The notes beneath the pieces were generated by a model. That model saw only the letters and a list, made by a program, of their open reading frames with translations. It was not told where the DNA came from and ran no database searches. Positions 1,750 through 62,662 of a DNA stretch of 64,000 nt are shown here, one piece after another (position 1 is the first letter of the stretch; each line of letters starts with the position of its first letter). Origin of the DNA: Orbicella franksi (Eukaryota); contig OZ116703.1 of assembly GCA_964199315.1 (NCBI GenBank), positions 31,806,001 through 31,870,000 on the forward strand, in the 5' to 3' direction. A program made the translations under genes and the position numbers.

Positions 1750-2196
1750 CTCCGTAGCACAAACAGACGGTCCTCGCACCGCAATAAGAAGCCACCATAT
1801 CAAACCAAACAGAATCCAGGACAGCACATACGAACCACAAAATATCAAGATCACCCATGGCCAGTGAAGATCAATCATTGTAGTGAATATATCAGCGAAG
1901 TACAGCTTCGTTTTCCTTGGTACATTCCTGGCTGACACTTTAAGAGATCCATTTTTACCGACCAAACGTTTCTTCCTGGAACGACTGCGAGAAGGTAATC
2001 GAGTGTGTTGATCGAAAGTTGGTGAAGAACATGGCGGATGAAGTGAAATTGGTGCTCGATTTCCTTGACGCTTCGATGATCGCATGCTTACCAGATTATC
2101 AGAAGAGAATGGTTCTATTCTAACGAACGATTCTTCTGCATCATTGGCATCACTTGTGTCGGCATGGCGATCAAAACTCCAGTTGTTAGATGCCAT
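1750..2196 (-). CDS. Inward-rectifier K+ channel (Kir) paralogue B, first coding exon only; the rest lies left of the window
   Basis: Translation contains RLVGKNGSLKV, slide helix FADIFTTMIDLHW, M1 helix and the extracellular Cys (RGPSVCATE). It ends at a phase-0 donor GAG|GTAAAT (1750|1749). I found no TIGYG exon in 1-1749. Confidence 0.9.
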
Positions 2197-2523
2197 TTAT
2201 CTGAGATGTTTGTGTGAGCTGTGACGGCTGTGACAGAAGAAGTCACGCTCTCTGAACTAGTACCCAATCTCAGACATTGAACTGGTCGCGTGGCTAAACC
2301 TGGGTGCCAGACGAAATTGCAGAGGCCTTGAAGTTAACATTTCGGATAAATCAAGGCTAAATGCTGTACAGTTGTCTCGTAGCTGTCTCGTATCGTCAAT
2401 TTGACTAACATTTTGTGTGGTGAGGGATTTTTGTTTATTACTGATAGTCTGTCTGCACAATTTTTCGCAGTCACTCAGTACATTTTCAGGGATCCTAAAT
2501 CCGGACTGAAAGCTAAGATGCAA

Positions 2524-2566
2524 CCGTGGACAGCTGTTTCGAGCTGGTTGGATTTCGTCAGCACGG
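2524..2566 (-). ncRNA. Minimal type-I hammerhead ribozyme motif of Penelope type; stem II degenerate
   Basis: Minus strand reads CCGUG-CUGACGA-AAUCCAACCAGCUC-GAAA-CAGCUG-UC-CACGG: perfect stem I, intact core, palindromic stem III and GUC cleavage triplet; stem II does not pair. Confidence 0.55.
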
Positions 2567-4057
2567 AGTAGCAGCAAAATATAGAGCAATCAGCACAAAG
2601 GCTAATTGTTTACTTAATTCTCATGGTCTGAATGACCTCAGATGAAACTGAAATCCATGTTTGTGCAAATGTCCTTCCCGTGTTAGCTCGTGTTCCCAGG
2701 CCTTAGCGCCCTGGTAGAACAACCCACCTACCACCTAGCCTTGATATATACAAGGAAAGAATTGTCCTTCCGTTTACTTCACTGCCCTGAGCACAATGAG
2801 AGCCTCCCAGAAGGCAGACATTGTCTTAGCTCGTCAAGCCAGCCAAGTAGAAAGTCAGTTGGAAAAACGAAAGAGGAGGGACTAGACAGCTCATTATTGT
2901 CTAGAAAGCGCTTTTTTTCTACATAAGAGTAGTAAAGTTCACAACTAATCAAATAAAAAAAAGTATTTCTCGACCTTCTTCAAAAATAACTTATTTATTT
3001 CAGGTCAAATTCCTGATCTTAAAATTATATTTCTGTGCACGTAAGAAAATAAATCACTCAAATTAGAAGTTCACTGAGAACCTTGTCGATGAAAAATGGT
3101 TTGCTGTTTGAATATCATTATTTACACTCATTACGTTATTTCTATGCGAGATAGGAATATTGCTAGGCTTGATTTATACCAGCCACTGTTTAGGAATGAA
3201 AGAAACCTGCATTCCTTCCCCGCAGTCTCTACTCGGGGAGGAAAGTGGGCCGAACTCGAGAGAGCGGCGGAAATCGAGCCTAGAATATTGCATGACGCAA
3301 AAATTCTACAAATTTTCTAAAAAGCCACCGAGTTTCATTTTCTCACTTGCCACTTACAATGGCTTCATTTAATTAACGCCTATTTAAACACACCTTCCAA
3401 GAAGACGTTTCTCCATCGTTGTGCAACCTCTACTGACTAAGATAACTTCTGTAAAGGTCGCCATGTTTAAGATTGAGCGCAAACGTTTTAGATCGCTACA
3501 AAAGTTAAAACAGGTCACTACGAATGACTTCAAACTAATTAATGATAGCTAGCAGTATCTAGCTAAAAAGCAATAATGTCAGTTATTTATTTTTACCTCG
3601 TCAAAGCTTGGATACGCGCGTGTGGATAGAATCAAGTTTAATTTTCGCTAGCGTGAATTTCCACGACAGCGGGACGCTTCCCAGAAAACGTGAGCAGGCT
3701 GTTAACTTTAACTCGTTTGCCCAGCATACAACTACGGCTAAAATAAAATTATCTGCCAAATTCTACTATTTTTCGTTTCAGCTGATAATCAACAACTTTT
3801 CTGATCACCACACAAAACATACTTGCGAGAACTTCCGTGTCATATCGTTTTATGATGTGTAAAAATTTTGCCTGTTTTAACGCTTATACAATGAAAAACT
3901 ATCATAAACGACTTCGTGCTATGATCAGAGCTATTTAAACGATGAATTTATCAAGCTGGTGCAAGAAAAACAAAGGGTCAATTCTTAATCTGAAATTTGA
4001 TGAAACAGAATTAACGATGGTATGGCGGATTATCGTGATACAAAAAGATTACCAATT

Positions 4058-4063
4058 TTTATT
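4058..4063 (-). terminator. Candidate polyadenylation signal for Kir paralogue A
   Basis: AATAAA on the minus strand about 450 nt after the stop codon; usage not verifiable. Confidence 0.35.
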
Positions 4064-4513
4064 GCGCAAAATCGAAATTCGAAAATGATTATCTAATTCG
4101 AATCGAAACGCAAATTTACCACAAGAAGTATTTTGATCTTGATTGCCATGTAGATATTCGCACCTTGATAAGCCGTTTGAGTTGTTAATTGCTGTGCAAA
4201 ACAAACACAAAAAGGTCAATCGGTTTACCGCCATGAAATTTCGATTAGCAGTCTTTGTGATTTAGTTCATGTGCGTATCAGTTCGAAAATGAAATCACTT
4301 CAGCTAGCTTGTGATTTAGCTTTTAAAAACTGAAATGAAATGGCGCTCTCGTTAATACCAAAATTACCAAACTGCTCACCCATATATAGTGCTTCATATT
4401 CCAAGCACTCATTTTACAAGGTCGCGAAAAAAATTTGCTCGCCGTGTCAAGCTATATATACACCTTATCATTCCAACACACCTTTCTTGTTTCTAATACC
4501 AACCTAACTTATG

Positions 4514-5920
4514 TTAAACATACGCAATTGTGTCTCCTCCGTTTGTTTCAAACCCAATATTTAATACTGTATCGGCAGGTCTTTGTTCTTCAGAGTCTGA
4601 ATCGTCGTCGACCTCTTCTTGCATTCCAAGGCTCGGCAAAGAAGCTTCTGAATTCATTTTAAACAATTTTCCTTCGTAATAGTCCTTAGCGGAAACCCGG
4701 GGGGTGGAAACCGGGCGAGTGTCATCGAAAACTGAAAAATCTACCCTGTACCTGCCAGACCTCCACTTACTCTCGTCCGTAGTGCTCACAAACTCATGGC
4801 CCCACAGGATTTCATCTGCGATATAGGATGTTTTCGCTTGAACTAGCATACTTGTTGCTTCTACTGTCCCTTCTAGAACCACGACGATCTCGAAATCGCA
4901 ATTACGCACGTCTTTCGGTCGCATTTCGTAGAGGGGGCTATTTTCGTCGATAACGTGAACTATGGTAAGTGGAAGAATCAGAAAGATTGTACTGTCTTCC
5001 AGCAAGTTCTCGTCACAGGTCCAGTCTATTCCGACGGGCAATTTCTGTTGATAAAACGGCAGTTCAATTCCTTCCCGAGTTTTTCTTTTACGAAAGAGGT
5101 ACACTCGAACGACCGCTTCTAAAATCTGACTCTTTCTAACGTCACCCACTCGAAACATGAGGCACATTTTGCCGTCACGCACGGCCACAACAGCGTTGCG
5201 AGAAAACAGAATCGTTTCCGCTCGGTTACGTGGACGAGAAAGTTTGGCGAAAATCAAACCCAACATAAATGCACCGATAATGAACCCGATCAGCGATTGC
5301 ACATTGAGTAAAACAACAGCTTCGGGGCAGTTAGGGGTGATTTGTCGACCACCGTAGCCAATAGTTGTTTGCGTCTCAAGAGAGAAGAGGAACGCACTTG
5401 TAAAGGAGTCAACATTATCGACACAAACGTTGCCTCCGCGAAAGTACGTAATAAGCCACCACAAAAATCCAAAACCCACCCAGCTCCCACAGTACATGGC
5501 AGTGTATACCAAAGTGATCCATCGCCATTTCGAGTCAATCATTGTTGTAAACAAATCAGAGATATACATGCCGTGTTTTTGTGGGACTTGTGATGCTACT
5601 ACTTTCAAACCTCCCTGCTTTCCGACGAGACGGCGTTGCTTGCCGTGTTTCGTCGACAGGACTCGCTTCGTTCTATTCTTTTTACTCCTTGCCTGCCGTG
5701 GTTTGTTCCTTCGAGGATCACTTTTCCCATTTGGCTGTTGTATAGTCACTTCTTCCAGTTCGTACTTTTCGCTACCGTCTCCGCCGGAGTCGTTCATGTT
5801 TGAGCAATCCGTGGACGATGCTCTCGAGTCTGAAAAATCCTCTATTTCTATCTGTTCCGCCTCTCCCCTTTGCCAGTGACGTCTAACTTGGTTGCTAGCC
5901 CTGTCTGAGTAAGACGACAT
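4514..5920 (-). CDS. Inward-rectifier K+ channel (Kir) paralogue A, 468 aa, single coding exon
   Basis: Full Kir signature: DLFTTMID slide helix, M1, SAFLFSLETQTTIGYGGR pore, Cys pair (VC...NCP), M2, FAKLSRPRNRAETILFS, RVGDVRKSQILEA and FEIVVVLEGTVEAT. Subfamily not assignable by eye. Confidence 0.97.
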   Translation of the reverse strand: MSSYSDRASNQVRRHWQRGEAEQIEIEDFSDSRASSTDCSNMNDSGGDGSEKYELEEVTIQQPNGKSDPRRNKPRQARSKKNRTKRVLSTKHGKQRRLVGKQGGLKVVASQVPQKHGMYISDLFTTMIDSKWRWITLVYTAMYCGSWVGFGFLWWLITYFRGGNVCVDNVDSFTSAFLFSLETQTTIGYGGRQITPNCPEAVVLLNVQSLIGFIIGAFMLGLIFAKLSRPRNRAETILFSRNAVVAVRDGKMCLMFRVGDVRKSQILEAVVRVYLFRKRKTREGIELPFYQQKLPVGIDWTCDENLLEDSTIFLILPLTIVHVIDENSPLYEMRPKDVRNCDFEIVVVLEGTVEATSMLVQAKTSYIADEILWGHEFVSTTDESKWRSGRYRVDFSVFDDTRPVSTPRVSAKDYYEGKLFKMNSEASLPSLGMQEEVDDDSDSEEQRPADTVLNIGFETNGGDTIAYV

Positions 5921-9840: not shown

Positions 9841-10104
9841 GGGGTAGCCTAATCAGTTAGCAAGCGGGATCGGGAGTCCAGATCGAGCGGTCTGGGTTCG
9901 AGCCCTCAGGGCCGGGGACATTGCGTTGTGTTTCTGAGCCTTTACAGCACCTTTGTCCACCCAGGGGTATAAATGGGTACCGGCAAATGCTGGGGGTAAC
10001 CCTGTGATGGACCAGCATCCCATACAAGAGGGAGTAGAAATACTCCCGGTCGCTTCATGTTACAGTAACTGGGATAAGCTCAAGATGTATAGGCCACTGG
10101 CCTG
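9841..10104 (+). mobile_element. tRNA-derived SINE (same family as 26118-26403)
   Basis: B-box GGTTCGAGCC at 9895-9904. Body shares gtataaatgggtacc...gggggtaacc...gatgga..agcatccca with the minus-strand copy at 26118-26403. Confidence 0.7.
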
Positions 10105-18600: not shown

Positions 18601-21600
18601 CTAAAACAAACACCTAGGGAAATTATCAAGTTTCACAGACTTAATTTTTCTTACAATGGCATCATGAGATTGTTGTGTTAAATTTGTGTATTTTTCAACA
18701 TTGTCCTTGTTGATGCAGAGGTTATCTAGTATTTTTTCCTTTCTTACTTTTACATGTACACATAATTCCCATCCATGGAGTGTTATCTTTTTTTCTGTTT
18801 GCAGCCAGTTATCAAGCATTTTGTGAGTTTATTGACAACAGCATACAAGCCACAAGTACAAACAACTGCCGTGACATGGAAAGAACGATAGACATACACA
18901 TCTTCCTTAGAGATGTAAGGCATACATGTAGCATTTCTCAATTTTAAGGAGGAATACATGTAATTGAATGTTAATCTTGATACATTTAAAAATGGAATTG
19001 ATTGCATGGCTGTATAGTCTAAAATTAATAATTCTTGGTAGATATGATTTTAATCTACCAACTGAAGGTTAATTTACCATGGCCACTTTTTCTCTTATTC
19101 ACCTTCATGAACATTATCCTAGCAGTATGTGTATTACCTCTTACTGACTGAGTGGTCCATACTATAAGTTACATGTACGGACCACATTTTTCCCTTAAGT
19201 TGATTTATAGCCGAAGCGCAAAGCATACAGGTCATAAATCAATGGAAGAAAAACAAGGATCTGTAAGTGAGTAAGTAAGTTAGTAAGATATTTATGATAT
19301 CTCTACTTGGTGTCTGATGAGTTTGGGAAACAATTTCTATTCATGTGGGATGTCTTCAAATGACTCTGTGGATGTACAACAACTCAAAATTGTAAAGTCA
19401 TTAAAAAAACAAAAATTCTAAATTTTTATTTGCCTTGAAAGTTAAGAACACTCAAGGCATTAAATTACAAGACATTTTAGTTACAAAAATAGCTTTAAAT
19501 TTTAGTGGGTCATAAGTAGAGCTCATCCAGCCAAATTGACCAATCACAGTGTGTGGAGTTGATGAGAGATACAACAATTTAAAGTAAATCAAGTCCTGCT
19601 GTTTATAACATATGTTTTGTTTTGTCTTTTTTCCTAGAAATTAGTGGCTATATTTGACAACGGAGAAGGTATGACGTATGAGGGACTAAAAGCCTTTGCC
19701 ACTTACTTTTTATCACAAGCTGATCGTGGCCTGGAAAAAGAGGAGGTAGATCTTATACCTGCATATTTGGATGGTGCTATATCCAAGTTTGGTGTGGGAG
19801 CTACACAAGCAGTAAGTGTTGTGACACAGTCACCTGACAGTGTGTGTTTGACAATATAATCCATGTAAGGGATGGACCATTATTTTTTTGAGTGGGGAGG
19901 GGCAGGGGCTGGGCAATTTTTTGGGAGCATAATTTTTTTTCCCACCTGTAGGTTGTGCATGTTTTTTTTGGTTGACAGTGGCTTGTGCAACAATTTTTCC
20001 TAACATCAAAAATCAAAATAATGGTGCCCAGTAGAAAGTACTTGCTCAGTGTTTTCCCCATGGCTCCACTTGCACAATTTTTTTCAGCAATTTTTGCTGT
20101 GCAGGAATCTTGTTTTGAAATCGCCCAATCCCCTCCCTCTCAAAAACTTAATGGTCTGTCCCTAATAAAGAGAAACTGTGTGTAGATGATAAAAATTGTT
20201 GTGAAGCCAATCTGACTGAGGATGCAGAAGGTGCTGTCCACCCATTTCCGATTCCAGGTGTTTGGTTGGTCGAGGAGCAGCTCAAAGAATTGTGTGGGAA
20301 AAATAGGAGAGGACTCTTGGGCAATCGATTGCCTGGAATGTCCAGGGTAGTCCATCTGCTGCACAGAGTGTACCTTAATGACGTCTTAATGGCCAGCTGA
20401 TCAAACATTACGTGTAATGTAAAGTGAAGGAATAGAATGCTATTGATGATTTGCTTTGGCAGGATTTTGAAGCCTGCAGTGGATGGTAACTCACAAAATA
20501 AGTTTTTGACTGAATCCATCATTCCATCACTTACATCTACATGTAGTCAACACTGTTCATACTTGGTTTGACAATCATGTCAGACCCCAGTATTTCTTGC
20601 CTTGAAATCAACTTTGTTTACATTGACCCAGACCATTGCTTCTGTTCCAGGGCTTCTACCTTGGTGACCGTATTAAAGTTATTACCAAGAGGGAGGAATG
20701 CCCATATGTGACTGAAATTGCGATATCCAAGGTAAAGTGATCTCTCATTTATAGGACAGAGTTTTATGTTGAGGTATTCCTATTTTGTACACTTTGAACT
20801 AGAAGTTGTCAGTAGTTTTTAACCTGGAGTTTGCATCTTACAGACTTACTGAAAGAAATTTATCTCCATTCAGAAGCAGGGGAGATGTAGGAGGAAGGGA
20901 GCTAACTGGCAAGGGTTTCACCTTAGACTCCCTTTTCAATGCTTGCTTTAACACAAACTTACTGAAAGCTCTGATTACCTAGTATGTCATTATTCATGTC
21001 TTGTTACGTGTCCTGATAGGAAAAGCTTCAAGAACGAGCAAAGGAAGGCAAGCCTGTATTTGAGGACTACAGATGGATAAGAAATCCCAGTGACACATCC
21101 ACATTGCAACCAGGAGAAGAAGAGAGATGTCTGAAAGATATTGTGAGAATTACAGACTTTTATGTATGGCAGGGGTGGGGTCCTAACTAACATATCTCGT
21201 AGAAATGGTAAAATCCTTAAATTCAAGCACAGGACAAGTCCTTGAGGATTTCAGGTGGCTTATACATGTACAACAAGAAAAATAACATTGAAAACGAGAC
21301 TTATTAAAATAATACTAAGCCATCGAGACGTTTAGTCATTTGGTAGCTGTTACTTAGGTAGTCAAACAACGCTTTTTGGCGTAAACCCGATCCGCCTTCC
21401 TGTGCGCGGTTTAGCCAATAGGGAGAAGTGTTGGAAGACAAATTAACAATGGCGGCAGAGGAGACAAAGAGAAATGATAAAATGTAACGATGAGACAAAT
21501 GTTTTTTTGTTCACAGATTGAAAGGGAGGCGGCATTCTCACAATTCACCATGATTATTATCACCGGCATACGTGACATTCACATCAATTCCATCCGTGAG

Positions 21601-24600
21601 GATGGTGGAAGCAGTCTGGCCCGGAACCTCGCCCATGTCTACCACTTTTACTTGTTTGGTGAGCGTGGCCGTACAGGCAACATGAAGTTACCCGCCTTGA
21701 GTAACTCCAGAATCCCTGTAAGTATACTGTGGCCTGATGATCAATAGCCTAGTGAAAGAAATCTTCACAGTTATGAAGTACAGGTCACCAGACGTGATCT
21801 GTACTGCGCATCGTTGGGCTCCGTTTCAGTTTTATTGATACATTTTGATTTATATATGCCAAGATAAGTAGTTTTGGCAACAAAATGTTGCACCCACGAA
21901 AAAAAAAAAAAACCAGGTGTCATATTGCACCTCTACCTCCCCATAACGGAAAAAGGTCACCAAACCCGATCCGTACCGCGCTTCGTCGGTCTCTGTTTCT
22001 GTTAAGTTTCTGTGTTATTGATACATTTTGATTTATGTCTGCATAAATAAATAAACGTTTTTTTGACAAAAAAAGTTTGCCCCCCCGCCCCCCAAAAGAA
22101 ACAAAAACAATGGACAGGTGTGGTTTTACACCCCTACCCCCCCCCCCCCTTAACGGCGACCTCTCTACAACGGCCACCTTCCTCTGTCCCGGAGGTGGCC
22201 GTTGTGGAGAGGTTCCACTGTAACTGAGTTAATCTGTGTGCTTTCTTTGTGTTCAGATGGAGTTAGGAATGAGTTCTTTCCTGAAGGTGGATATCAGGCT
22301 GGTGATAGACGATGGGAGAAATTCCAACCAAAAGAATTTTTTTAATCTTCGTGAAATCGATGATGATCTGGAAAGTTTGTACCAGACCAGAGCTAAGGAA
22401 TGGTTCCCGTTTTCGTTGACAATGAAGGTTCCTGGTTTGGACCCTCATCAAACTGTCCAGGTATGTTTTTGATGACTGCTGTAAACTTAGAACGTAAGGA
22501 TTAACTGGCCAATCAGAAGAGGCGTAAATACTGCCATGGGCCAATGAAAATGTGAAGCCAAAACGTGCAACCCGCAGTAACCGCGGGAAACTCGCTTAAG
22601 CCAAGGCATTGCCTTCGCTTCTGATTGGTTGAGACAACAGCATGTACCGTGATTGCTTGGGTAGACCACGTGTTGAAAAAATTGTTAAAACCAGTCACGG
22701 GAGGCACATCAAGTTTGGTTAGGACTGACTCATTTGAAATTTCGCTTAAATCTTACCGAAACTTGGAATTCCTTTGAGACTGTATTTCCGTGTATTTTTC
22801 AGGGGGTATTGATGTATTTTCCTCATGAGGCGGGACACGAGACTCTTCCTCGGTCAACTGATCTTGAAGATGATGCACAAGAGCCTATATTTGAGTGTTT
22901 CTGGCAAGGAAGACTGGCTCCTCTCTCCTATGTTCACAAGTAAGGCGTTCATGTCGTGCCGTGCATGCCGATAAATCTGAAATAGGGAACTCTTTCAATT
23001 ATTTAAAAAAAAAAGATTGTTTACAGCAACCTGACCACTCTTTGCATCGGACTTCCAAGAAAAACCAAGAGCCAAGAAAATCCAAACCGCGATGGCCAAT
23101 AGTTAGCATCGATTTTTATTATTTTGTTTCTCCATTTTCTTCTCAGTTATAGTCCCTGTGCTCCTTCGTAAAATATTGGCTTACCACTCGAAAATGAAAT
23201 TCATATTTTGGCGTCGCCGTGTAGTTTCCTCTACATAACAACACTATTGTCTCCATAGGATGGAATTTTGCACTTCTCCAGCTCAACGATCAAAGAGGCA
23301 GAAAGATGTAGTGCCCGACAGCTGTTATCGCAGGCTCAAGGGAATTCTGTTCTTTAACAGACATACACCTGTCTCTAACAACAAACTGAAGATCCTGCTG
23401 GACGAGAGAAAGGACTTATCCAGTGCCCTGGAAGATGCGTCAACTGAAAGAAGACTGCCCCAGGAATTCAGATCATGGCTGGAAAAATGCCATCGAGAGC
23501 TGGATAAAGAGGTAGGTCTCAAACTACGCACGCAGCGATGTTTAAGCGTTGCGCCATGACTTTATTCTGCTGGCATGTTTCTTCTTTTACACAGTGTTTA
23601 TTGTATTCAGAACAGTATCCCAGTGATTGCAATAATTAATTAAGCTTATCACAATTCAACGTAAAATGTGCAGTCTGCAAAAACCGCAGGAAAACTCGTG
23701 CAAGCCAATTAACGCGGCTGGTGTTAGGACACTAGGGGACATGTTGAAGGGACATGAAGCGTAAGGACATGATGCAGCCATAGTTTTCCTTGTGTGACAT
23801 GTCCGTTTTTGTGAAAAGGTACTGTTGGGGGATAGACTTTTGTCCCCACAACACGAAGTTTAGCAAGTTTGTATTCGTGCGCCATGAAACAGGCCCAGTT
23901 GACCTCAGTTTTCAATGTGGCATCATGTACGCTGCTCTCGCAAACTGTCTCCGCTAGGACCCATTTTAATGCCTCAATCCGCTTCGTGTGCACCAGCTTG
24001 CTTACTATCCCTGCAACATGCGTCCTATGTGTACACACGAAGGCACTTGTCCCCGCTTCAAGTCTCCCCGAACTAGTGTGTCCCGAGCTTTATTTTTACG
24101 TGAAAAGAAAACTTTTTCCTCGGACTGATCAGGGCTTCTTTTCGACTGTCGATATAAAACGTTTGTTTTTAGTTCTTGATAGACTGGCCCGCCTATCCGC
24201 GGGCCCGTCTACTAGTAACTGTAAAAATGTAAATTGGAGAACGAAAATTAAGATTGAAAGATTGATAAAGCAGTCTTAAAAGAATATTTTTCTGTCGTCT
24301 TTCGTAGGTTAGCTTCGACTCTCCACTGCCAGCTTCTCAACAGCCGAGGTCAGGTGATGTGCTTCACAGCGTGTTACGTGTCACAACTAGTTCAGGAGTA
24401 CAAGTCTACAAAGTTTGTGATATTGTTAAACTGGACACCAAACCCATCATCTATGGCAAAGTCATGCACTTTGTAAAAGTCAGCAAGAAAAATGACGTAG
24501 ACAAGGTTGTTGTACAGCGACAACCAGAAGAGGTATGTAAAGACGAGACAGTAGGCGTTTTGTTAAATAGTTTCTACAGCAAACTACTCGCTTCTGTGAT

Positions 24601-27600
24601 CGAAACCCATTTCGATCACACTGATCGTACTGATTTTAACAATTTTTTTATTCGTAGGTTTACCCGTCTCAAAAAGAAGAACGGCCTATCTCCAGAATAT
24701 TAGAAATTCCTGATCAAAACACTCTGAAGAAGGTATTCAGCCAGGAAAAACAAATGCTTCCCAAAACAGGTAATTTACATTTGTGTGTCGTGCGAGTCGT
24801 CTCTCCGCTAGCGAGAGAGACGGTAATTTCCTGGAGTTATCGCCGATCCTCGATTAATCGTCCCCATTTGTGGATGATGTGAAATAATCGCTTTCCTTGA
24901 ATTATTCCCCCACCCACCCCCACCCACCCCGACTCTCCTCCTTCCTAGCCCTCTCCATCGTCCTTGAGTAATCAAGTCCCTCTCCCTACATCTCTACTTT
25001 CTTTCACTCCCCTGTCAAGTTTACATCTTGAATATCTAATTGAATGGGATACAAACTTTGATTTAATCGTTAAATACAACAGATAATCGACAAAATCTCA
25101 AGCTGAATCGCTCCATTCAACCTAAAATTGTGAACATTTCAAAACGGGTTCAAATGGAAAGGAAATTTCCTGGAAAGTTCCCAGAAAATCCGTAAATTGT
25201 TGAATTTCCGAAAAGCGAACCATTCAACCAAAAATGCCATGAGAAAAATTAAGTGGAACGGAGATTCCCGGTAAGAAAGTTCCGACAATTTTGGTATACC
25301 TCGGGAGGTTGTCCTCTTTTCCATAAATTCCAGGAAATGCTGTTTTATGTTCTCACGGTATTTACGTTTTACGAATTGTAAATTGTGTCACTCAGTACCT
25401 GACCACTTTTCAAGTGGAGAGAAGTATTGCGTTACGCAACGTGACGCACTTTCTTCTGAGGAAGCGTTGCGAATTGCGTTACCAAAGAAATAGCTGCTAC
25501 ATGTAATTACAAACTGGTTTTGATCTTGTTGACAGTCAGAGTGTACAAGGACAACATGAGCAATGAAATCACGTCCAAAACAGTGTTGCAGTGGTCGGCA
25601 GGTGAAACACAGAAGGATTTTACCGGCTTCTGGGTGAAAATCTTCAACGGCGAGCGACCGCCCAAACAGCTAGTGACCTTGCACAACAGGAAACTGTCCG
25701 TTCGTCAAGTGATAGAGGGACCAGAAAACATGGCGCCCATTCAGAATGACCAACCCCATGACGGAGAGAAGTTCGGCTTCAAGCCTTTCGGGTTGTCAGT
25801 GGCGGGCACTTACGTTCTCAAATACATTGCGATGCTGGGAGAGAGGGAAATGGCTTTCACACAATTCGACATTGTCATCAAAGGTTAGTCAATGGCTTCA
25901 GAGTCTGAAAGTAATTCAGTTGAAGAAACCTGCATATTATCCTCCGATGGTCGTAGATAATCATTCCATCCAGGGAATACCTCTAGTCTCTTCATGCTAA
26001 GGAAACCGGAGATATGCTCCAGCCTGTTGAAGCACTAGGCTCCGTCAAGACTTAGCTTGCTGATTTTCTTATTTACAACTCGAGCATCCAAACGTCAAAC
26101 AAATACTGCCTACGTCACGAGCCATGGGGCCCAGCAGGCCGGCGCTTATCTCCGGTTTCTGTGGCATGATGCGACTAGGAGTATTTCTATTTCCCCCCCC
26201 CCCCCGGATGGGATGCTAGTCCATCGCAAGGTTACCCCCATCATTGAATTCGCAGGTACCCATTTATACACCTGGGTGGAGAGAGGCACTGTGACAGTTA
26301 AGTGTCTTGCCCAGGAACCCAAGACAATGTCCCTGGCGCGGGATCGAACTTGGACTGCTCGATCCTGAGGCGAGCGCACTAACCATGGGGCCACCGCGCC
26401 TCCCAAACAAATACTAGGTAATGTAGCAATCTGATCTTGTTTTGTCTTTCTCTTCTTAGCCAACATCGCTTCCCATTTCACTCTTACCGAGCCTTCACGA
26501 ACAGAAACTCCACGTCTTGGGCTGGGCGAACCGGCCCTCAAGTTTAAGCTCTTATTCCAAGACAGCAAAAACAACCCGGCGACAGTGTTCAGTTCCGGGG
26601 AATTCGTCAAGTTGACAGTGACATGCCCAAACTTGGACGTGCAAGGCGTTAAGGACAAGTACAAGCCGAACAGCGACGGAGTAGTTGAGGTCAGCGGTAT
26701 AACTCTGACTCCCAATGCCTCGGGCAAGGTGCAGTATGGGCGCGATCAGATGGTCCGAGTTGACGTCACTGGAATTGATTACAGTAATTACGTGACGTTT
26801 CCGGTGAAAATTAAAGCAGGTAAGAACGGTGCAAGTAGGAATTGTTTGAAGGTTTTATCCCGGGGGGGGGGGGGGGGGGCCGTGGGGAAATTTATCCGAT
26901 ATGAAAGGGACCGGGGTGCTGGTCGGAAATGTTGACAAGAACTCCTAAGAGGTACTAAGATCCCGTTTTGTGGGCGTGGCTTGAAATTTTTTCCGCCCCT
27001 TAGAGGTATCAGCTCCCGCTGTGGACGTTTAGGGGTTGTACACCCTGAGAGCTACCAAAACCGCTTTTTTAACTCCTATAAGGTATGACGAGGACCCCCT
27101 GTCCCTTTTATATGGGAGTCCCCCCCTAACGGAAGGGTTTATTTCTGTCTTTGTAAAAATAGCTGGGATCGTTTTCAGACATAGCTATTGTTTGTCAGTT
27201 TTAATAAAGTAGCTGAGACTATCGCTATTATCTTTGCCATAGAAGAGCTATGCTATTCTTTTTCAAAATGCTAGACATAAATGAGTTCCTCCTCCTTAAA
27301 TGCTTTAATGTCGGGATTTAAGATTACCGGTGATGCGATTACTGCGCTCTGAAGCTCTTAATTTGAGGATTATGAACTGAGATGTGTCTGAGAAAATAAG
27401 ATAAGGAGATTGACTTCAGTTGTTTTGTTGCTTGAACGTCAAGGCTTTTGACTTACTAAGAACGCTGGGAATAGTTTGTTGTTTGGTATTAACTGTACAG
27501 AGCAAGTTCGCTTTAACCTGCGCTCCAGTTGGTTTAAGTTTTTGTTCATTTATCAAATGTTACGGTAATTTCGATGTGTGCTTTGCCATTTCTGATTGTT

Positions 27601-33600: not shown

Positions 33601-35891
33601 AAAAATTCAAGGCAATAAAGCTAGCGGTAAATGACTTACTTGAAAACCCACCTCTTGACGTTCAAAACGCGGGTCGAAAACCTCAAACGTGACGTCTGGT
33701 ACGGGTCAGGTGACCCCTAGCGGTTCACCGTTCGCGGGAAACTTGGATCTAAAAGTCTCAAATGTTGCGGTTGGTCTTCGGAAAATGAATTACAGCTGGA
33801 TAGATTGTTTGAAGCCAGTCTTCTCTAAAGCAGTATCTTTGAAAATTGTCGTACATATGTATAGATTGCCAACCTTTTTTTCCTCATCCTATACTGGGAA
33901 ATATTCGCCCTTCCCGATGTTGTATGTCACAGTTGGTCTGTAACGCCACGATCTCCGGCGTTGCACTTGATTACTAAGGAGCTATATTTTTTAGCCACTT
34001 CACAAGAAACTGTTCCTCATTTCACCCAATGCATGCCTGGTTGACTTCGTAACTATCTAGAGGTCATGAATCAGGATACATTCTATTCTGTTCCAGATGA
34101 ACATATACAGCGCATACAGAATGAGCTACAGCCGCTGAGAAAACAGATTGCAGATTACGAGCAGAACGTGGCAGAATCCAAAAGAAGACTGTCTCGGTGC
34201 CAGTCGGAGTTGACGACGGCACTCACGCCTGTCCGAAGCTCGTTCCGAGGAATGCCGAGGAGACCCGACGTAGTGAATATACTTCAGACCAGTAGAAACG
34301 AACTGAATCAGTTGGAATCTAGTCAGGCCACTACTCGAACAGTCATCACACAACCGGGCCACCCTCCTGCTAGGATACGACACTACATAAAGGGTGTGTT
34401 TACTGTTGCATTTGGTTTAATAAGTCAGTGTTGCGGAGCAGGGTGGTGGGGAGGGGGGTGGTTCAGTGTATGATTAGAGCGCCCGTCTCCCATCAGTGTG
34501 GTCCGGGTCGAATCCTGCACCCGACGTCATAAATGGATCGAATTTGTTGTTGGTTCTTGTATTCCTTCGATGTCAATTTACGAACACTTTAGCGAGTTCA
34601 TCAGAGCTCTTCCGAGTTTCATAGGTAAATAACATATTATGGACATCTCGCATTTTGATATTCATGCGGCAAATAAACTCATGTCATAACTTTCGAGAGC
34701 ATCGCGAAGTTAGTGTCCTCCCAATTACGGTTAAACGAGATGAATCAAAAGTCTACTAGTGAATTCAAACGTGTCTTGACTCCAAATCACCCGGCTTGAA
34801 ATATGCCCCAAAGCTGGAAAACTGAGATATAAGTTCCCGTTACTGATAACCATGATTTGGTGGAGTGTTATCTCTGAAAAAATTCAGCAGCTACTGATTT
34901 GCTTGTTCTCGTCACATAAATGTTGGATTGATTTTGTGGGCGTGAAGGTAAGAAAGAAAATTGTCTTGCTGTTTTGGCGGGAAATTGTAAACTTAGGTTT
35001 GACAGTTGATATTGTTTTTCTTCTTGGTTATTAGCATTGGTCATTCGTTATAGCAACAAGTGTTGTTTTATTCCCAGAAATTGTGTGGAAACGACGAAGA
35101 AATATTTTTGTTTCTTTTTTTCTTCTTCAGGTATTGTAGCAGAACTCGCGTACGTCTCTGACCCATTAGTTGCTCGCATCCTCTCGTGGTATCTTCAGTC
35201 GAAAATGCCAGTAGCGCTCACTACCACCACAGAACAGCAACGAAAGGTTTACGACGCAGGATGCTCGGCTTACTGCGAAGCGACTTTACTTCCCTTTTCG
35301 AAAAGGGACTTTGATGGAAGCGATGGCAAACCTCTGCCTTTAGAGCTCCCTGCGCCTCCTTCAAATTACCGAAGCCCTATTGAATTCGCTGTGAATCTGC
35401 TCGAGTTTACGAGTGACAATGGCTACCTTCGCAGCAGCCTTTTTTGGAATCTTCTATCGAAGACGATCGTGGTCAAAGATCTGAAGTCTGGACAGACGTA
35501 TCGCGAGCACCTCACCCGAATGAAGCAGTCTTGTCCCACGATTTTGACACGTGATGGGAACATGATCGCCTCTGACGGGTTGATGGATCCCAAGAAGCGC
35601 TGCCCACCAAGAATGGAAGATTTGCGGTTCGCGTTCGGAGCGTTACCGGCTCGCGAAAAGGTGCGTTATCGCGAACTGAAAGAGAGGTGCGAAGCTTTGG
35701 ACAGATTGCAGTTAACGTTCGAAAAACACGAGAAAGAGGCGGAAGAAGTTCGCGCGAAAGAAGACCAGTTGCGAGAGGTCAGAAATAGTTTGTCTCCTCG
35801 TATTACCGAACTTGAAAGGGAACTTAGAAAGTTGAGACCTGGCATTGAAAGAGACGGTAGTGAACCCCCTGATAAACGTAGAAAAAGATAG
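15672..35891 (+). CDS. SMCHD1: SMCHD1-like protein (GHKL ATPase plus SMC hinge), 26 coding exons, 5901 nt, 1966 aa
   Basis: Hand-spliced exons, all GT-AG with consistent phases: 15672-15794, 17023-17112, 17812-17923, 18805-18914, 19638-19811, 20651-20731, 21020-21142, 21517-21717, 22257-22460, 22803-22939, 23259-23511, 24308-24532, 24658-24769, 25536-25883, 26460-26819, 27761-28350, 28579-28714, 29242-29419, 30175-30338, 30914-31233, 31647-31757, 32104-32392, 32546-32657, 32764-33053, 34097-34393, 35131-35891. Motifs: CEFIDNS, DNGEGM, SKFGVG, LAHVYHFY, NLREIDDD, PIFECFWQGRL, CYRRLKG, EFRSWLEKCHRELDK; hinge GIVAELAYV...ILSWYL and CPTILTRDG; C-terminal PPDKRRKR. These are colinear with recalled human SMCHD1. 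Confidence 0.93.
16561..16853. mobile_element. MITE with 24-bp terminal inverted repeats
   Basis: taataacataaacatgaaaaaatt versus the reverse complement of the right end, taataatatgcacatgaaaaaatt (21/24). Confidence 0.65.
17331..17580 (+). mobile_element. tRNA-derived SINE, second family
   Basis: A-box-like TGGTTAGTGTG (17350) and B-box-like GGTTTGAGTCC (17386), no closing acceptor stem, followed by a non-tRNA body. 3' end approximate. Confidence 0.55.
17943..18165. mobile_element. Short MITE-like element
   Basis: cacggggcttg and caagccttgtg inverted ends (9/11); no TSD seen. Confidence 0.4.
20190..20400 (-). mobile_element. Degenerate Penelope-like reverse-transcriptase fragment
   Basis: Minus-strand translation SSPIFPTQFFELLLDQPNTWNRKWVDSTFCIL resembles the PLE RT block SPxxAxxFMExFE...WxRYVDDTF with the catalytic YVDD decayed. 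Confidence 0.35.
21855..22220. mobile_element. Tc1/pogo-type MITE remnant, possibly composite
   Basis: Right end ...gaggttccactg|TA with repeated acggccacc/ggtggccgt motifs. A decayed relative lies at about 42813-42940. Left boundary uncertain. Confidence 0.45.
26118..26403 (-). mobile_element. tRNA-derived SINE, near full length, antisense in an SMCHD1 intron
   Basis: Minus strand GGAGGCGCGGTGGCCCCATGGTTAGTGCGCTC...GTTCGATCCC gives A and B boxes; body shared with 9841-10104. Confidence 0.8.
26859..27127. mobile_element. CCCGGG/poly-G-ended MITE
   Basis: cccggggg...gggagtccccccc termini. Internal blocks (gaggtactaagatcccgttttgtgggcgtggcttgaaa) are shared with 49303-49611. Confidence 0.65.
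31400..31574. mobile_element. Tigger/pogo-like MITE
   Basis: TA|cagttcaacccctattaa ... ttaataggggttcaactg|TG inverted ends (17/18) with internal ggccg..taatag repeats. Confidence 0.7.
34457..34570 (+). mobile_element. tRNA-derived SINE head, third family
   Basis: A-box-like TGGTTCAGTG and B-box-like GGTCGAATCC, then gttgttggttct. Confidence 0.45.
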
Positions 35892-45884: not shown

Positions 45885-46804
45885 CATCCCTTTGCCATGT
45901 GGGTACTATGTATACGGGACTTCTTGGGCGAGGGAAAATCTTACATTAGATTACAAAGGTAGTGAACAGTATCAAAGGTACAGTGAAGTATGTTCTGATG
46001 GAGCAGGGGTTTCTTAAGGGACTGGGCACCGGGCAAGTTGACTGGTTGTGAAGACGATTTTGCCCCCCGGGTTTGACCATCCAGCGGAAAGTGTTTCTTA
46101 CAAAGAAGTTCAGTTCTGATAGTTTTACCCGCCTTGCCCTCTGGCGAAAAATGTTAACGAAACCACTGATAGAGTGAGGTACTGCTGTTCCAAGTTGCAA
46201 CCCATTTTAGCCTTTTCTTTGCCAAACTTTGACAGTACTCAATAGGCTGTTCTTATTCAAATGGTTTACTGCTGTTGTAATATTGTGAGAATAACCAAAA
46301 ATGTGTTCTTTCATTTGCAGGGTTTTCCATTTCAATGGGAACGAACATGAAATATGTGATGGACAAATATTGCGGCCAATATTATATTTAAAGTTGAAGA
46401 TAAAATAAAGATTGATTAACTTTACTTCTCGATAACATTTATTGGGTGGTTACGTTAACAGAAAATTGAAGTACTCTACTGGTGTGGTATATGAACTCGT
46501 TGCATAAGTACTGCTTGTGGCTGTTTATTTAAATGAACAAAATAGTAAGGTGAGGTGGGATAGGATTTTGTGCTGCCATTCTGATCGTGGTGTTTTTTAC
46601 CAGCTGTTTTTGAGGCCCCTTTTCTTTTTCCTGTTATGAGCATTAACTGAAATTTCTCTGTGAAAATTCTTGGCTTGTCATGTATGGTGCAAGAAAACCG
46701 AGGGAAAAGGATATAACTTGGTTGTATGTGATAATTGCAGAACATTTCTAACTGTCCAGTGATGTAAACCATCTGCTCAGCATGTTTATTTAGTATCGGT
46801 GGAG

Positions 46805-56919: not shown

Positions 56920-56951
<32 letters not shown>

Positions 56952-59900
56952 CGCAGCACATCTTCCATGTAACTGCGAAAATTTAAGTGTAGTATTTTGA
57001 TAACTGTTTCTCTGTTCTTGCTGTCGTTTTTGTTGTTGCTGATTAGTTTACCAGTAATCTCATTTCCTTGCTTTCAAGTAACATCTGTTTCAGTTGTTGA
57101 ATGAGACCTACAGTCTGTGAGTACATACCTTGCACTAATCAGTAATTTTACAAAAAAAAAATAGATTTTGCAATTCAGGTTACGTAGGTTACGAAATCTC
57201 ATTACAGTCCAGTAACGATTATCACACACATTGCATTAGGTTCAAGCTGTGATCATTGAGGTCTCAGTAACTCTCTTTAATTCTTCAGTGTAGAGGTGGT
57301 TTCACTGATCTAGCTTTTTCGACTGTGTCTGGGTTTAGCGAACTCTCCGGTTAACACTTTGAAAATTTTATATATTTGATATCTTAATCCTGTGTTCTAT
57401 CAGTGCTACTGTTTCATTTCGGTGTTATCTTTCATCACTTCAAAATACCAAGGCATTAGCAGACGTTATAATAACACGAAGCACTAATAAGTTGGACTTT
57501 GTTTCTCTCTACTTGCGAGAAATTTTTGACACCAGTTTTTCATTCCTTCTGCTGCCAATGTTGCGACTGAAATGTTTGTGACAAGTGTAACATAATTCCC
57601 AAAGAGGTCAAGAGGTTTATTAACAGGTTAATAACGTGCTTCTGAAACGTGAAATTTGGAGAATTTCGTTGGAGAATTCCGAACGTGTGAACTCAAACAA
57701 GTACGTAAGAGCAACGAGTTTTTTCCGCATTAGAGCAAAATGATCGAGTGGAAACGTTTGCAAGCTTGTTTCTAATTCAGTGGAACGTCTTTGGAACTAC
57801 AGATACATTTGCGTGTTTGCCGATACATATTTAAGAGAGGAACTACCTTGCATAGCAACTCGTTATCATAAAATCTTAATTAAAGAAGATTTGTGTGAAA
57901 AAAAAAAATAAAAAATAAAACCCCGAACTGAATTACAGCTAGAGTAAATCTGGTTTTGTTATTTCAGGAATATTGACCTCGCAACTCTTTCTAATTTTAC
58001 GAGCTTCTTTAGGGCATTCCCAGTTTTTTTTTTTAACGTTAAGCTTTAAAAAAACCAACAACTATTTATGATGAGGAATTGAAATTTTTGTTTCTGAGGT
58101 GGAGGGTTCTGAAGTCGCGCTCTCTGAAACGGATAATATCAAGGATTTTCTAAATTCTTTAAGAGTATTAACGGTTGATATCAATGATGTTAACCGATCA
58201 AGCATGCACTCAAAGAGAAACATTTTTGAACATTTTATCTGTTAATTTCAGCTTTGATTATAACCAGGGAATTCTACTCCTCAGGAAAATTTTTAGATAT
58301 TTGTCCTAAGAAGTGCATGTTATTATCGCAATTGTAGTACCGACGATATGGTGATAAAAAAAGTTAATTGTCGTGATATTCAACTTATTTCCCTGCTACA
58401 AGCGTGCAGAGAGTTACTCTCTCACGAGGATCACTGATTTTCGGCAGTTTGGAGTGGATACCCGCGGTATAAAACTCTTATGCAGTCGAAATTAAGCACG
58501 AAATTTCTAGAAAGTCCAGACTAGACAGAAAATTAACACCTAAAAAAAAATGGGTGCACCCCAAAATAGCCGCCCACAGCGCGACCTGTAGACTGCAAAC
58601 ATCGCAGCTACATACCAACCGCAGCCCAGGTAGCGCAATGATCGGAATACACAGCGATTGGCAGACGTTTTATGTCTTTTGAGGCTGTGTGTGTACTTGT
58701 GCGTTTGGTTCTTGTAAATCAGACAGATACCTTGTAACTCAATGGTGCTGAATTTATGCCTGGAAACCTAATCGTAATCGGTAATAGAGAGAAACAAATT
58801 TTAAAAAAATGCTTAACACTACTCACTTCTTGATTCTTACTGCAGCGCACGAATCATTTTAATTTCATCTACCTTCAACATCTATATAGAAGTGAATTAT
58901 TCTTTTCAAGAAAACTTCGGAGCTGATAGCTCTCTTGTTGCCAACTAGTTCAAGTTGTCTCCCTTCGTGGCCTATCGCAAACAAGTTATCAACTGGCTCA
59001 CAGGCAGGCTGCATTTGATATGGTGCTTTTAGCACCTACAACCAAACTTGTTTTAAATTATGGCCTTCATTTCTGATGAAAATATTAAAAAGCACCATAG
59101 GCATTTTCCTTGGGATGTTTACTAGTTTTACAAAGGAAACATCAGAAGACTTAGTTCTAATTATGGTGGATTTAATCCAGGGGTAAGAAGCCACCGGAAA
59201 TACACCCCCGTACTCTGATTCCCCCCGTGCCGGAAGTGCGTCACATGTCCCCGTTTCGAAGCACGTTTCGCTGTAAAGTTTGTAAACAACTTAAAAACAT
59301 TGGGGTCGCGATTTCCTTGCTCCAAAAATAGTGTGTACAAAAAATATATTAAACCACGGCAAATATGCAACTGAAATTTGGAAACAGCTTGGTACTAATT
59401 GTCACACAAGTGACTGATAAAAATGCTCTCGGTATCTCTTTTGGTGACCTTAGAAAAGTAGCACTTTTGATAAACAATCAAACAAAAATGCGGTTACGCA
59501 GTGATAACACACTCACAGGGACTGCGTTTAAAACAAACATAGGTCCCGGCTTAACCCTGACAGCGGTAAAGATATTTTGAGATATTTCGGTTCGTGGTCA
59601 CGTCGACTTGATATTTCATGACCACAGTTCTTCAAGCGTAGCTGAAAAGTTCACGCAGCGTTGGTCCTGGCGGTTGTTATCTATTTATTTAGTTGGAATA
59701 TTTTTTGGGCTTATAGCACTCCCTGGATTAGAACTGAGAGCAGATATATCGCTAGAGACCGCAACACCATGTGACGGAGTATAACATGACTTCAAGACTA
59801 GTATCGGACTGCAAGTGTGCGGTATTACATTTCGGAAGTAATGTCATTAGTGGTTACAAATGCGTCGGCCGCGAGCCCCTCGTTTATGCATGTGAGACAC

Positions 59901-61159
59901 AGCAAGCACGCGGCGATTCAATATAACATTCACGCTCATCGGTTTGTTTTCCAAATCTTACCCAATTCATTTTTCGTGATTTTAACCCGCGTTATCTCCT
60001 CACAATCTCCGTGTAATCCAATCAGTCAGTTATTATCGCTTGTTGCTGACTCTCATACTGTACCAGCTCGGCCTATCTTGATTTTGCCGCTGGAACGTGG
60101 AGATAATGGTGCGATGGCCTTTGGGTTATTTCGGGTGGATATATGTTTCCCGTCTAGTCTCGGTCTGACCCCGAAAGCATCTGCATTTGCTCTTAGCTCG
60201 AAATACTCGCGAATGTCGGAATAAAAAACGCAAATGAGGTTTGGCGAGGCGAAAAAGGAATTGCTCTCGACGACATGACGTGAAATTTTGCGATTTAGCT
60301 TATTCACCGTTCGTTTAGTCACTCGCTTGATTTTTGCTCTCTCCTTGACCCCATCTGGGGTTTATTAATCTTCACACATGCAACCGTTAATGGCGTTGAA
60401 AACGAGACTCTGGTTACGTCGGGTTTGGCGATCTTTCTGAAATACGTTGCCTTGTGAACTTGTAATTTAATTATGCCCTGCTAACAGGACCTATTTTCCA
60501 GAAAGATCGAAGTGACCTTGCTCGCAGGAGATCTGAATTATGGACGATTTTATCAAACGGTTCGTCTAATTATCAGCGCCCTTATCAAACACGCGCGCAC
60601 ACTTCTTCTACAAATTGATATCTCCCACGAGCGCTTACGACATTTGTTCCAGCTAAGATATTTGTCGCCCTTTCCTGTTATTTTCCTCTTTTGTTCTCTA
60701 CCCTTTCCCGAACGCAAATCCTTTTTTCCCAGCTCCTACGCTAAAATGTTGTCTCGAAAAAAGACTGTCGAAGTCGCATTTCATGATCTCAGACGGTACC
60801 AATGCAACTGTAAAAAAAAAATATCTCCCGTGGCTTAACTTGATACTGTTTAAGACTCGCCAAAGATCACACCACCGTGTCGTGCCAGTGGATGGCAAGC
60901 GTTTGATTTGAGACGGGAGAAGAGCGCGCCAGCTCTGTCAACAGTACGGCGCGAGATAATTATAGAGTGCGCGCACGGCATGTAGTTTATTTACTCTCAC
61001 GGAATTGCTGTAGCAGCGTTCGAGGCCTACGTATCCTGCGAAAAGGAAATGAGTTCCAATCAAAATTTTCCTCGCCTCCAGAAAGACAAAAAAAGATAAC
61101 AGAGTTGCTGAGGTTTTGAAAGTAACACTTCGACGCCCACGTGCTCTGAGATCCCTTGG

Positions 61160-61312
61160 CGATGGCCAATAACAGAGCTTAGTTAAGTGGTTTCAACACA
61201 CCTACATCCAGCGGGTGTTTATGTCCTTGACACGAGCCATCTGATTGGCTGCGGTTTTCGGCTCGACCAATCAGCGAGAGAGGTAACATAATATGTTGTC
61301 TCGCTTGATTGG
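61160..61312 (+). promoter_or_regulatory. SoxE proximal promoter with four CCAAT/ATTGG boxes
   Basis: CCAAT at 61166 and 61267; ATTGG at 61244 and 61308; 140-290 nt upstream of the likely ATG. Confidence 0.55.
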
Positions 61313-61450
61313 TCAGGATATTATTATATGTGTGTTTTGAATATCTATACGCCAATATACGAATTGGCACGAAGTTCGATTTTTCGGCTGGAGAATTCTC
61401 AGTCCTGGTTTGAAAGCGTTAGAAAACAACTGATTGCGGTGGTAGAGATC

Positions 61451-62662
61451 ATGACGGAACAAACGAACCCCGAAATTAAGAAGAACGAACCGGACATCGC
61501 TCAGGCGAAGAATATGGATTTAAGCAGCGCCATCGCAACTGCGGTAAATCATGTCTTAGATGGCTACGACTGGTCTTTAATTCCGCTGCCTGTTAGAGTG
61601 AACGGAGGCCATAAACACAAGCCACACGTTAAGAGACCTATGAATGCCTTTATGGTTTGGGCGCAGGCGGCGCGGAGAAAGCTGGCTGATCAGTACCCAC
61701 ATCTTCACAACGCTGAACTGAGCAAAACATTAGGAAAACTGTGGAAACTGCTGAATGATGCGGAGAAGAAGCCCTTCATCGAAGAAGCCGAGAGACTGCG
61801 GCTGAAACACAAGCGAGAGCACCCCGATTACAAATATCAACCGCGGAGAAAGAAGCAAAAAGGCAACGGCGGTCCCGATCAACCGGAGGCAACAATCTCA
61901 GCCGATGATCTGTTGAAAGTCCTGAAAGGCGATACACAGCTGGTGCCAAAATCTGGATGCCAAGAGGGCAACTGCGCGAGCCCAGAAAGCAGCTTAAGCG
62001 AAGAAGCTAGCAGCCCGGGCTCCAGCAGTTCAGCAACTTCGCCTCCAACTACCCCCACAGCCACGGTCAAGTTGGAAGGTGGACTGAAGTTCTCCGAGGC
62101 GAGCGTGTCAGAGTCTGACATCCCAGGTCCTCCATCCAGCTTTCCTGCCTGCCCAAAGAAAACAGAGCAGAACAGCGGCAACAGCGCGATCGACTTTCAC
62201 GTTGAAATGGGCGACCTGACCACAGATCTAATGGTGGACACGACGGAGTTCGATCAATATCTGCACTCGTATACTCAGCCGCTGCTGTCCACACCACCTT
62301 CAACGGCCTCGTCCGTCACGTTTTCCTCTCACGGCTTCACCCAAACACACGGAGCGAACAAGTTCTTGTCGAATAATAATTCCGTCTCATCCAGTTACAC
62401 GGAGTTTATGGAACAGCTACAAAAGCTTCCCTCGTCTTACCCTCCGAACCAAGTCGCTCCGTCAGCCCTGCAGCAGAGAAACCAGCCTGAAAACGGTGCC
62501 TTTCAATTCCCGTTCGGTGAGCCTGAAGTCAGTGGTAATACCTCACGGGCCTTCGCGATCTCCAATGTTCCTTCTATTGTTGTTCCTGCTTCAACACCAA
62601 CCACTACCGCACAGAACCCACAGTCACCTCCCTCTCGTCTGCACACACTCGTTTGGAAGTGA
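61451..62662 (+). CDS. SoxE: SoxE-group HMG-box transcription factor (Sox8/9/10-like), 403 aa, intronless
   Basis: SoxE dimerisation domain [22 protein letters not shown], SoxE HMG box [42 protein letters not shown]...YKYQPRRKK, and central IDF...EFDQYL motif. ATG 61451 preferred over in-frame 61328, which lies immediately after the CCAAT cluster. Confidence 0.97.

Follow-up and report, generated by a model that had tools for sequence, protein, structure and literature searches.

Does the vertebrate association of an inwardly rectifying potassium channel (Kir) gene with SOX9 reach back beyond the vertebrates? The question is raised by a stretch of the Orbicella franksi genome in which Kir genes lie on the 5' side of a predicted SoxE gene. 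The SOX9-KCNJ2 locus is a leading model for chromatin domains that shield genes from the wrong enhancers and for disease-causing structural variants, and in human KCNJ16 and KCNJ2 bound the SOX9 gene desert at 17q24.3 and KCNJ4 lies near SOX10 at 22q13.1. Vertebrate Kcnj2 and Sox9 occupy neighbouring domains (PMC8290416). The window that we analysed is the whole 64,000-nucleotide stretch C6:31806001-31870000, on the 33.9-Mb chromosome C6 of a 497-Mb coral genome. Based on gene identities, distances and orientations in five genomes, together with a Kir tree, we infer that the adjacency is of common ancestry: it is rather likely that Kir-SoxE is an ancient conserved microsyntenic pair of the cnidarian-bilaterian ancestor, and the vertebrate KCNJ2-SOX9 neighbourhood probably goes back to a compact pairing that was in place before cnidarians and bilaterians diverged.

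A preliminary description of the window had placed a Kir tandem about 55 kb on the 5' side of SoxE, with the Kir genes pointing away from it, and both the distance and the orientation hold with domain-supported gene identities. The Kir gene closest to SoxE, KirB (4514-5920, minus strand), is a single-exon inward-rectifier gene of 468 amino acids with matches to IRK (E 1.9e-44) and IRK_C (E 3.7e-59). Farther out lies KirA, also on the minus strand, whose first coding exon (1750-2196) runs from the N-terminus to the end of the first transmembrane segment (TM1) and matches the N-terminal half of IRK (E 1.6e-19). This exon ends at a splice donor at window position 1750, and the second exon is found outside the window, to its left (C6:31805203-31805952); the spliced KirA model encodes 398 amino acids with a TIGYG filter. 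SoxE occupies 61328-62662 on the plus strand, 55.4 kb from KirB, so that the Kir genes lie on its 5' side and transcription is divergent (5'-to-5').

The IRK transmembrane domain, the IRK_C cytoplasmic domain and the T-I-G-Y-G selectivity filter together establish inward-rectifier (Kir/KCNJ) identity. When we scanned the 497-Mb genome with the IRK profile, we found a family of five Kir genes, all with intact models and an intact filter (5/5). Four of these form one cluster (C6 31.780-31.812 Mb) that extends beyond the left edge of the window and runs, outward from SoxE, through KirB, KirA, a third gene with two exons and finally a gene of one exon that is read from the opposite strand; the remaining Kir sits unlinked on contig C15. 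The tandem of the preliminary description therefore exists as two intact minus-strand genes, but it is really part of this larger cluster. KirB orthologues were found throughout Anthozoa.

Gene structures within the Kir cluster (C6:31780419-31808196) are mixed. KirB and the outermost Kir consist of a single exon, and one intron just past TM1 (at about residue 170 of KirB) is common to KirA, its neighbour and the C15 Kir. Two losses of an old intron would account for this, and the alternative is that some of the copies arose as retrocopies.

The SoxE coding region has no intron and contains an HMG box and the group-E Sox_N domain. We found Sox_N (PF12444) at residues 56-90, directly N-terminal to the HMG box, with 33.3 bits against a cut-off of 23.1, and no other gene in the coral genome gave a Sox_N match. 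The best solved match of the HMG box is SOX9 at 158 bits, followed by the next Sox group (SOX4) at 114 bits. Among named proteins, the closest relatives are a Montipora 'SOX-9-like' protein and Nematostella SoxE1 (Q3S379; 57% identity over 91% of the query), which groups with the coral protein in the SoxE tree, and then vertebrate SOX9 and SOX10. Judged by these domains and relatives, 61328-62662 is a true member of the SoxE (Sox8/9/10) group. Since the first 41 codons lie outside the coverage of homologues, translation probably begins at the ATG at 61451. RNA runs of several studies, and also independent DNA runs, contain the coding sequence in full.

As in the coral, the SoxE1 coding region of Nematostella and the SoxE coding regions of other hexacorals are intron-free. 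The amphioxus SoxE (L013:10001-11991) has an intron within the HMG box, between the positions of residues 152 and 153 of the coral open reading frame (ORF). We also encountered a second anthozoan family of SoxE-like proteins (P0031-P0034 and P0401-P0410), which has an HMG box close to that of SoxE and no Sox_N match, and which may represent 'SoxE2'. A query with one of its proteins (P0031) also brought out amphioxus and Clytia SoxE proteins. The best coral candidate for this family, at C2:2627921-2628172, is linked to no Kir.

We then compared the genes in relatives together with flanks of 10 kb on either side of each gene, and found the pair in two other hexacoral lineages. The first, assembly ERZ25071792, is sister in the SoxE tree to all sampled Scleractinia, that is, to the window's group plus the Montipora group. 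Its contig ctg18844 (825 kb) carries SoxE at 283346-284632 (minus strand) and a KirB orthologue at 354126-355508 (plus strand), separated by 69.5 kb and arranged 5'-to-5' like the window, with two further Kirs beyond the KirB orthologue. The 5' exons of an SMCHD1-like gene, whose counterpart in the window lies between KirB and SoxE, adjoin the Kir in this lineage, and from this position and the shared layout we conclude that the locus is collinear with the window. The second lineage, assembly ERZ25072724, groups with neither anemones nor stony corals in the Kir and SoxE trees, and its proteins, at 58% identity to the window's, are about as distant as those of Nematostella. On its contig ctg140681 (1.77 Mb), a Kir at 1379677-1381380 (minus strand) and SoxE at 1472664-1473845 (plus strand) again face away from each other 5'-to-5', with 91 kb between them. 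Similarity other than in the SoxE and Kir genes was absent, at both the protein and the DNA level, between the window and the flanks of ERZ25072724, Nematostella and amphioxus.

Outside the cnidarians, amphioxus served as a linkage check set beforehand, and there too we found a Kir upstream of SoxE. On chromosome CM027640.1 (23.08 Mb), a single-exon Kir (12756548-12757945, plus strand) lies 85 kb from a SoxE gene on the same strand (12843189-12845179, plus strand; the protein is named 'Sox-9-B-like'). Within 10 kb of the Kir and of SoxE, a range that takes in 20 of the 85 kb between them, no further gene is called. There is at least one further amphioxus Kir type, which sits on another chromosome. 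The SoxE-linked Kir scored 366 bits against Kir2 structures versus 348 bits against Kir3, and a tree that places it with vertebrate Kir2 was not rejected (approximately unbiased test, p-AU 0.34). On sequence evidence, these results are compatible with, and do not prove, a continuous lineage of SoxE-linked Kir genes leading to Kir2. In human, KCNJ16, KCNJ2 and SOX9 presumably lie on one strand with the Kirs upstream, and KCNJ4 and SOX10 likewise, which is the amphioxus layout. Altogether, three hexacoral lineages and amphioxus have a Kir 5' of SoxE at a distance of 55-91 kb, and in vertebrates a Kir is the adjacent gene, or one close by, on this side.

To set these distances against chance, we estimated how often a Kir would fall so close to SoxE. 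For the coral (2 Kir loci, 497 Mb), a distance of 60 kb or less has a probability of about 5e-4 over the whole genome, and of about 3.5e-3 when the only requirement is that Kir and SoxE sit on the same 33.9-Mb chromosome. For amphioxus and a limit of 86 kb, the corresponding values are about 7e-4 to 2e-3 over the genome and 7.5e-3 given a shared chromosome.

A number of observations weigh against an ancestral pair. The most direct comes from Nematostella, where SoxE1 lies at 2.127 Mb of OW051996.1 (16.39 Mb) and orthologues of the coral-cluster Kirs lie at 4.12, 8.06 and 9.96-9.97 Mb, at distances of 2.0, 5.9 and 7.8 Mb from SoxE1 and thus in no tight link. The linkage pointed out in the preliminary description recurs in two other hexacoral lineages and in amphioxus, which supports its proposed age. 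In Nematostella only a chromosomal link remains, at 2-8 Mb, and since that description had named unlinked genes in other cnidarians as a refutation, this genome counts partly against it. Tight linkage is limited to two deep lineages, hexacorals and chordates, and amphioxus mainly moves the vertebrate linkage back to the chordate ancestor rather than providing a second independent witness for the cnidarian-bilaterian node. Octocorals, medusozoans, echinoderms, hemichordates and protostomes lie outside the comparison, and in Drosophila, Sox100B and Irk1/Irk2 presumably share arm 3R megabases apart. The orientation of the Kir also differs, being divergent in corals and in the same direction as SoxE in amphioxus; the compared 10-kb flanks hold no non-coding conservation between coral and amphioxus; and the genes inside the coral interval, the SMCHD1-like gene and a small nucleolar RNA (snoRNA) host gene, are not in the visible 20 kb of the amphioxus interval. 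Finally, by a rough estimate, chance neighbour pairs shared by coral and amphioxus within conserved linkage groups could number on the order of a hundred. For comparison, a few hundred true ancient gene pairs have been reported (Irimia et al. 2012, PMC3514665).

The three Nematostella Kir orthologues are spread over 6 Mb, each amid unrelated genes, and we regard this as a clear case of a Kir cluster dissolved by within-chromosome rearrangement. Nematostella has about fifteen chromosomes, and the presence of all four genes on a single one is what the scattering of an ancestral cluster within its chromosome would leave; their dispersal also means that tight Kir-SoxE linkage is dispensable.

A separate observation concerns the chromosome as a whole. 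All coral loci with an LMF1 domain are on the SoxE chromosome (C6: 2.41-2.42 Mb and 25.32 Mb); in human, LMF1 is a neighbour of SOX8 and LMF2 lies on 22q13. This is a hint that C6 is the coral counterpart of the linkage group from which the vertebrate SoxE regions derive. A six-frame search of the coral genome gave no match to POLR2F (PF01192), a neighbour of human SOX10, the exons of which are probably too short for such a search.

The main rival to an ancestral pair is that Kir and SoxE were juxtaposed independently, on the hexacoral and chordate stems separately, by within-chromosome shuffling inside a conserved linkage group. Nematostella, with its unclustered Kirs 2.0-7.8 Mb from SoxE1 on one chromosome, speaks for this explanation, as do the differences between coral and amphioxus in orientation and in intervening genes, and the location of every LMF1-like locus on the coral SoxE chromosome is in keeping with a correspondence to the human SOX8 region merely at the scale of whole chromosomes. 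Very many windows were scanned, moreover, and some coincidences of this kind are expected. Against this, once a shared chromosome is granted, adjacency has a chance of about 0.004-0.006 for hexacorals and of 0.0075 for amphioxus, which makes the joint chance very small, and since the family is tiny (2 coral loci), these odds are not inflated by paralogues. Wherever the pair occurs, the Kir is also found 5' of SoxE, and the link is stable across hexacorals as divergent from one another as anemones are from stony corals. Together, these points lead us to regard independent juxtaposition as possible but unlikely.

We next asked how the coral Kirs relate to the vertebrate channels. The Kir tree contained the five coral Kirs and sequences from Nematostella, Actinia, Exaiptasia, Actinostola, Dendronephthya and Sanderia, and, from bilaterians, fish and hagfish Kir2, mammal, frog and tunicate Kir3, fish Kir6.1, two amphioxus types, sea urchin and insect sequences. 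Bilaterian labels were assigned through cluster names and matches to solved structures, and Kir1, Kir4, Kir5 and Kir7 fall outside the tree. In the maximum-likelihood tree (64 rows, site-heterogeneous model), all 40 bilaterian rows split from all 24 cnidarian rows (100/100), and a FastTree of 169 rows recovered the same split. The cnidarian side comprises four anthozoan orthogroups, a diversity that arose independently of the sampled vertebrate subfamilies (Kir2, Kir3 and Kir6). A constraint that unites the two SoxE-proximal cnidarian orthogroups with the Kir2 clade lowers the log-likelihood by 57 units and is rejected (p-AU 3e-8). Read from this topology, the coral Kirs are co-orthologues of the sampled bilaterian Kirs.

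Comparison with solved structures gave a similarly even picture. KirB matched Kir2.1, Kir2.2, Kir6.1 and Kir3.2 best, at 301-316 bits, with near-equal scores across the Kir2, Kir3 and Kir6 structures (291-316), and scored lower against Kir4.1, Kir5.1 and Kir7.1; for Kir5.1, a type absent from the tree, the score was 233 bits. The Kir2-type N-terminal domain PF08466 had no match in the Kir proteins of the window in a domain scan, and a survey of ion-channel repertoires (PMC12749960) contains no tree of Kir subfamilies. We had also considered the coral Kirs as possible Kir2 or Kir5 orthologues, a relationship suggested with the first description of the locus; the 100/100 split between cnidarian and all sampled bilaterian sequences speaks against this, and for Kir2 the rejected constraint rules it out.

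The same tree bears on the likeness between the coral tandem and KCNJ16-KCNJ2, which the preliminary description had read as mirroring each other. All four members of the coral cluster fall inside the cnidarian-only group, and the cnidarian Kirs stand apart from all sampled bilaterian Kirs, so on this tree the tandem is not homologous to KCNJ16-KCNJ2. KirA and its cluster neighbour are mutual nearest relatives, which places a duplication within the coral lineage. As far as the tree can tell, the coral Kir-Kir tandem is a cnidarian-specific duplication, independent of KCNJ16-KCNJ2.

Two loci were said to lie between the Kir genes and SoxE, and this is about right. The first is a multi-exon SMCHD1-like gene (15597-35891, plus strand) with an SMCHD1_S5 match (PF22899) at 23260-23559 (E 3.4e-18), a weak GHKL ATPase match at 19644-19859 and a C-terminal exon (35037-35891) that resembles SMC-hinge/DMS3 clusters. 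The second is a snoRNA host region on the plus strand with a putative extent of 40010-46425, inside which a SNORD52-type box C/D snoRNA is matched at 41447-41517 (47.1 bits, above the Rfam gathering score). Beyond these two, we found nothing else convincing between KirB and SoxE in the window. About 2 kb upstream of SoxE lies a short conserved non-coding block (59230-59291, no strand assigned), which rests on a single weak match, 79% identical over 62 bp, to the equivalent position about 2 kb upstream of SoxE in ERZ25071792.

A dispersed repeat is present twice in the window (10007-10079 and 26118-26224), where it overlaps ORFs with a common conserved peptide. It recurs at about 80% identity near SoxE of the ERZ25071792 lineage (L009:19591-19690) and is probably an old coral mobile element.

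If the adjacency is of common descent, which is the simplest reading, the cnidarian-bilaterian ancestor would have had a single Kir a few tens of kb upstream of a single SoxE. Hexacorals would have retained the pair at 55-91 kb, with the Kir locally multiplied into a cluster that now faces away from SoxE, and amphioxus would have retained it at 85 kb with the Kir on SoxE's strand. After the vertebrate genome duplications, the pair would have survived as KCNJ16/KCNJ2-SOX9 and KCNJ4-SOX10, with a much expanded interval. In Nematostella the genes would have been scattered along one chromosome, and the presumed dispersal in Drosophila would be of the same kind. The Kir or the Kir cluster would have been inverted in one lineage. 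As to why the pair persisted, long-range SoxE regulatory DNA may fill the upstream interval, with the Kir as a bystander or as the edge gene of a regulatory block; breaks between SoxE and the next outward gene would then be selected against. We hold this regulatory reason for retention more weakly than common ancestry itself.

An ancestral pair could also have been retained with no functional constraint at all, surviving only in slowly rearranging genomes in which 50-90 kb is a small target for breakpoints. The loss of the pair in Nematostella with no obvious consequence and the presence of unrelated genes within the coral interval are in line with this, and no distal conserved non-coding DNA was found, the 62-bp block and the SoxE promoter/5' region being the only matches to ERZ25071792 in the 10-kb flanks. 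That comparison, however, is confined to the 10-kb flanks, and distal elements would fall outside it. The pair also survives in two of the three vertebrate SoxE paralogous regions, and deeply conserved pairs with developmental regulators are argued to be typically under cis-regulatory constraint (Irimia et al. 2012, PMC3514665). On balance, we think retention of an ancestral pair by slow rearrangement alone improbable, although it deserves to be kept in mind. The most far-reaching version of the regulatory account, in which the compact 55-90 kb pair was itself a regulatory block of the cnidarian-bilaterian ancestor, from which the 2-Mb SOX9 landscape and the KCNJ2-domain border descend directly, appears to us doubtful. 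Were it true, the separation of a channel gene from SoxE enhancers would be older than boundaries built on CTCF, and an invertebrate locus of small size would allow it to be taken apart experimentally. Lastly, mis-called genes or chimeric contigs are a very improbable source of the pattern, since, even though two of the comparison contigs come from metagenome-style assemblies, every ORF is intact with full domains, the layout is repeated in three independent assemblies and in the chromosome-level amphioxus assembly, and the SoxE coding sequence occurs in independent DNA and RNA runs.

If the pairing was ancestral at tens of kb, the vertebrate gene desert would derive from the expansion of a short upstream interval. 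Amphioxus and corals would then offer compact natural versions of the locus, in which one could ask whether the insulation of SoxE from Kir is ancient and whether it can do without CTCF. It would also follow that Nematostella alone under-reports the microsynteny shared by cnidarians and bilaterians.

Among known systems, the closest is the vertebrate KCNJ16/KCNJ2-SOX9 locus at 17q24.3, which shares with the genomes studied here a Kir located 5' of SoxE, there as the nearest protein-coding gene, and where the genes presumably share a strand as they do in amphioxus. On the other hand, the vertebrate gene desert measures about 2 Mb, compared to 55-91 kb in hexacorals and 85 kb in amphioxus, the coral interval contains two unrelated genes, and the coral Kirs point away from SoxE. 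The coral Kir cluster, moreover, is a product of cnidarian-specific duplication and not orthologous to the Kir5.1/Kir2.1 pair. To our knowledge, cnidarians have no CTCF, and a vertebrate-type boundary therefore cannot be assumed, so that any insulation in the coral would work differently. The KCNJ4-SOX10 locus at 22q13.1 is similar in that a second SoxE paralogue has a Kir2-type gene on its 5' side, which would put the origin of the pairing before the genome duplications of vertebrates; it differs in having about ten intervening genes over about 0.45 Mb. Our literature search returned no paper on Kir-SoxE linkage outside vertebrates, or on KCNJ4-SOX10 and KCNJ2-SOX9 as a paralogous pair.

Deeply conserved pairs around developmental regulators are already known, and the Kir-SoxE pair itself was not met in the literature searched. 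As described in the survey by Irimia et al. 2012 (PMC3514665), conserved microsyntenic pairs, or genomic regulatory blocks, resemble the present case in that an unrelated gene stays beside a developmental transcription factor for more than 600 million years, with long-range cis-regulation as the proposed cause, and were defined by presence in at least four major metazoan lineages with at most four intervening genes. Kir-SoxE is a non-paralogous pair that stays within this number of intervening genes, with two loci in the coral and none called in the visible 20 of 85 kb in amphioxus. The lineages in which it is shown or established number three (Cnidaria, in hexacorals only; Cephalochordata; and Vertebrata), compared to the at least four of the survey, and Nematostella is negative. 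The cnidarian genome used there is believed to have been that of Nematostella, which the searched text does not name; if so, the cnidarian link would be missed, since the pair is dispersed in that genome. Kcnj is not mentioned in the main text of the survey (PMC3514665). The chordate synteny of Runx and Clic (PMC2265531) is alike in that the paralogues of a skeletogenic transcription factor each kept a channel gene as neighbour through the duplications of the vertebrate genome. However, the Runx-Clic synteny reaches only as far as tunicates, with the amphioxus genes on different scaffolds (PMC2265531), whereas Kir and SoxE lie together in both amphioxus and hexacorals.

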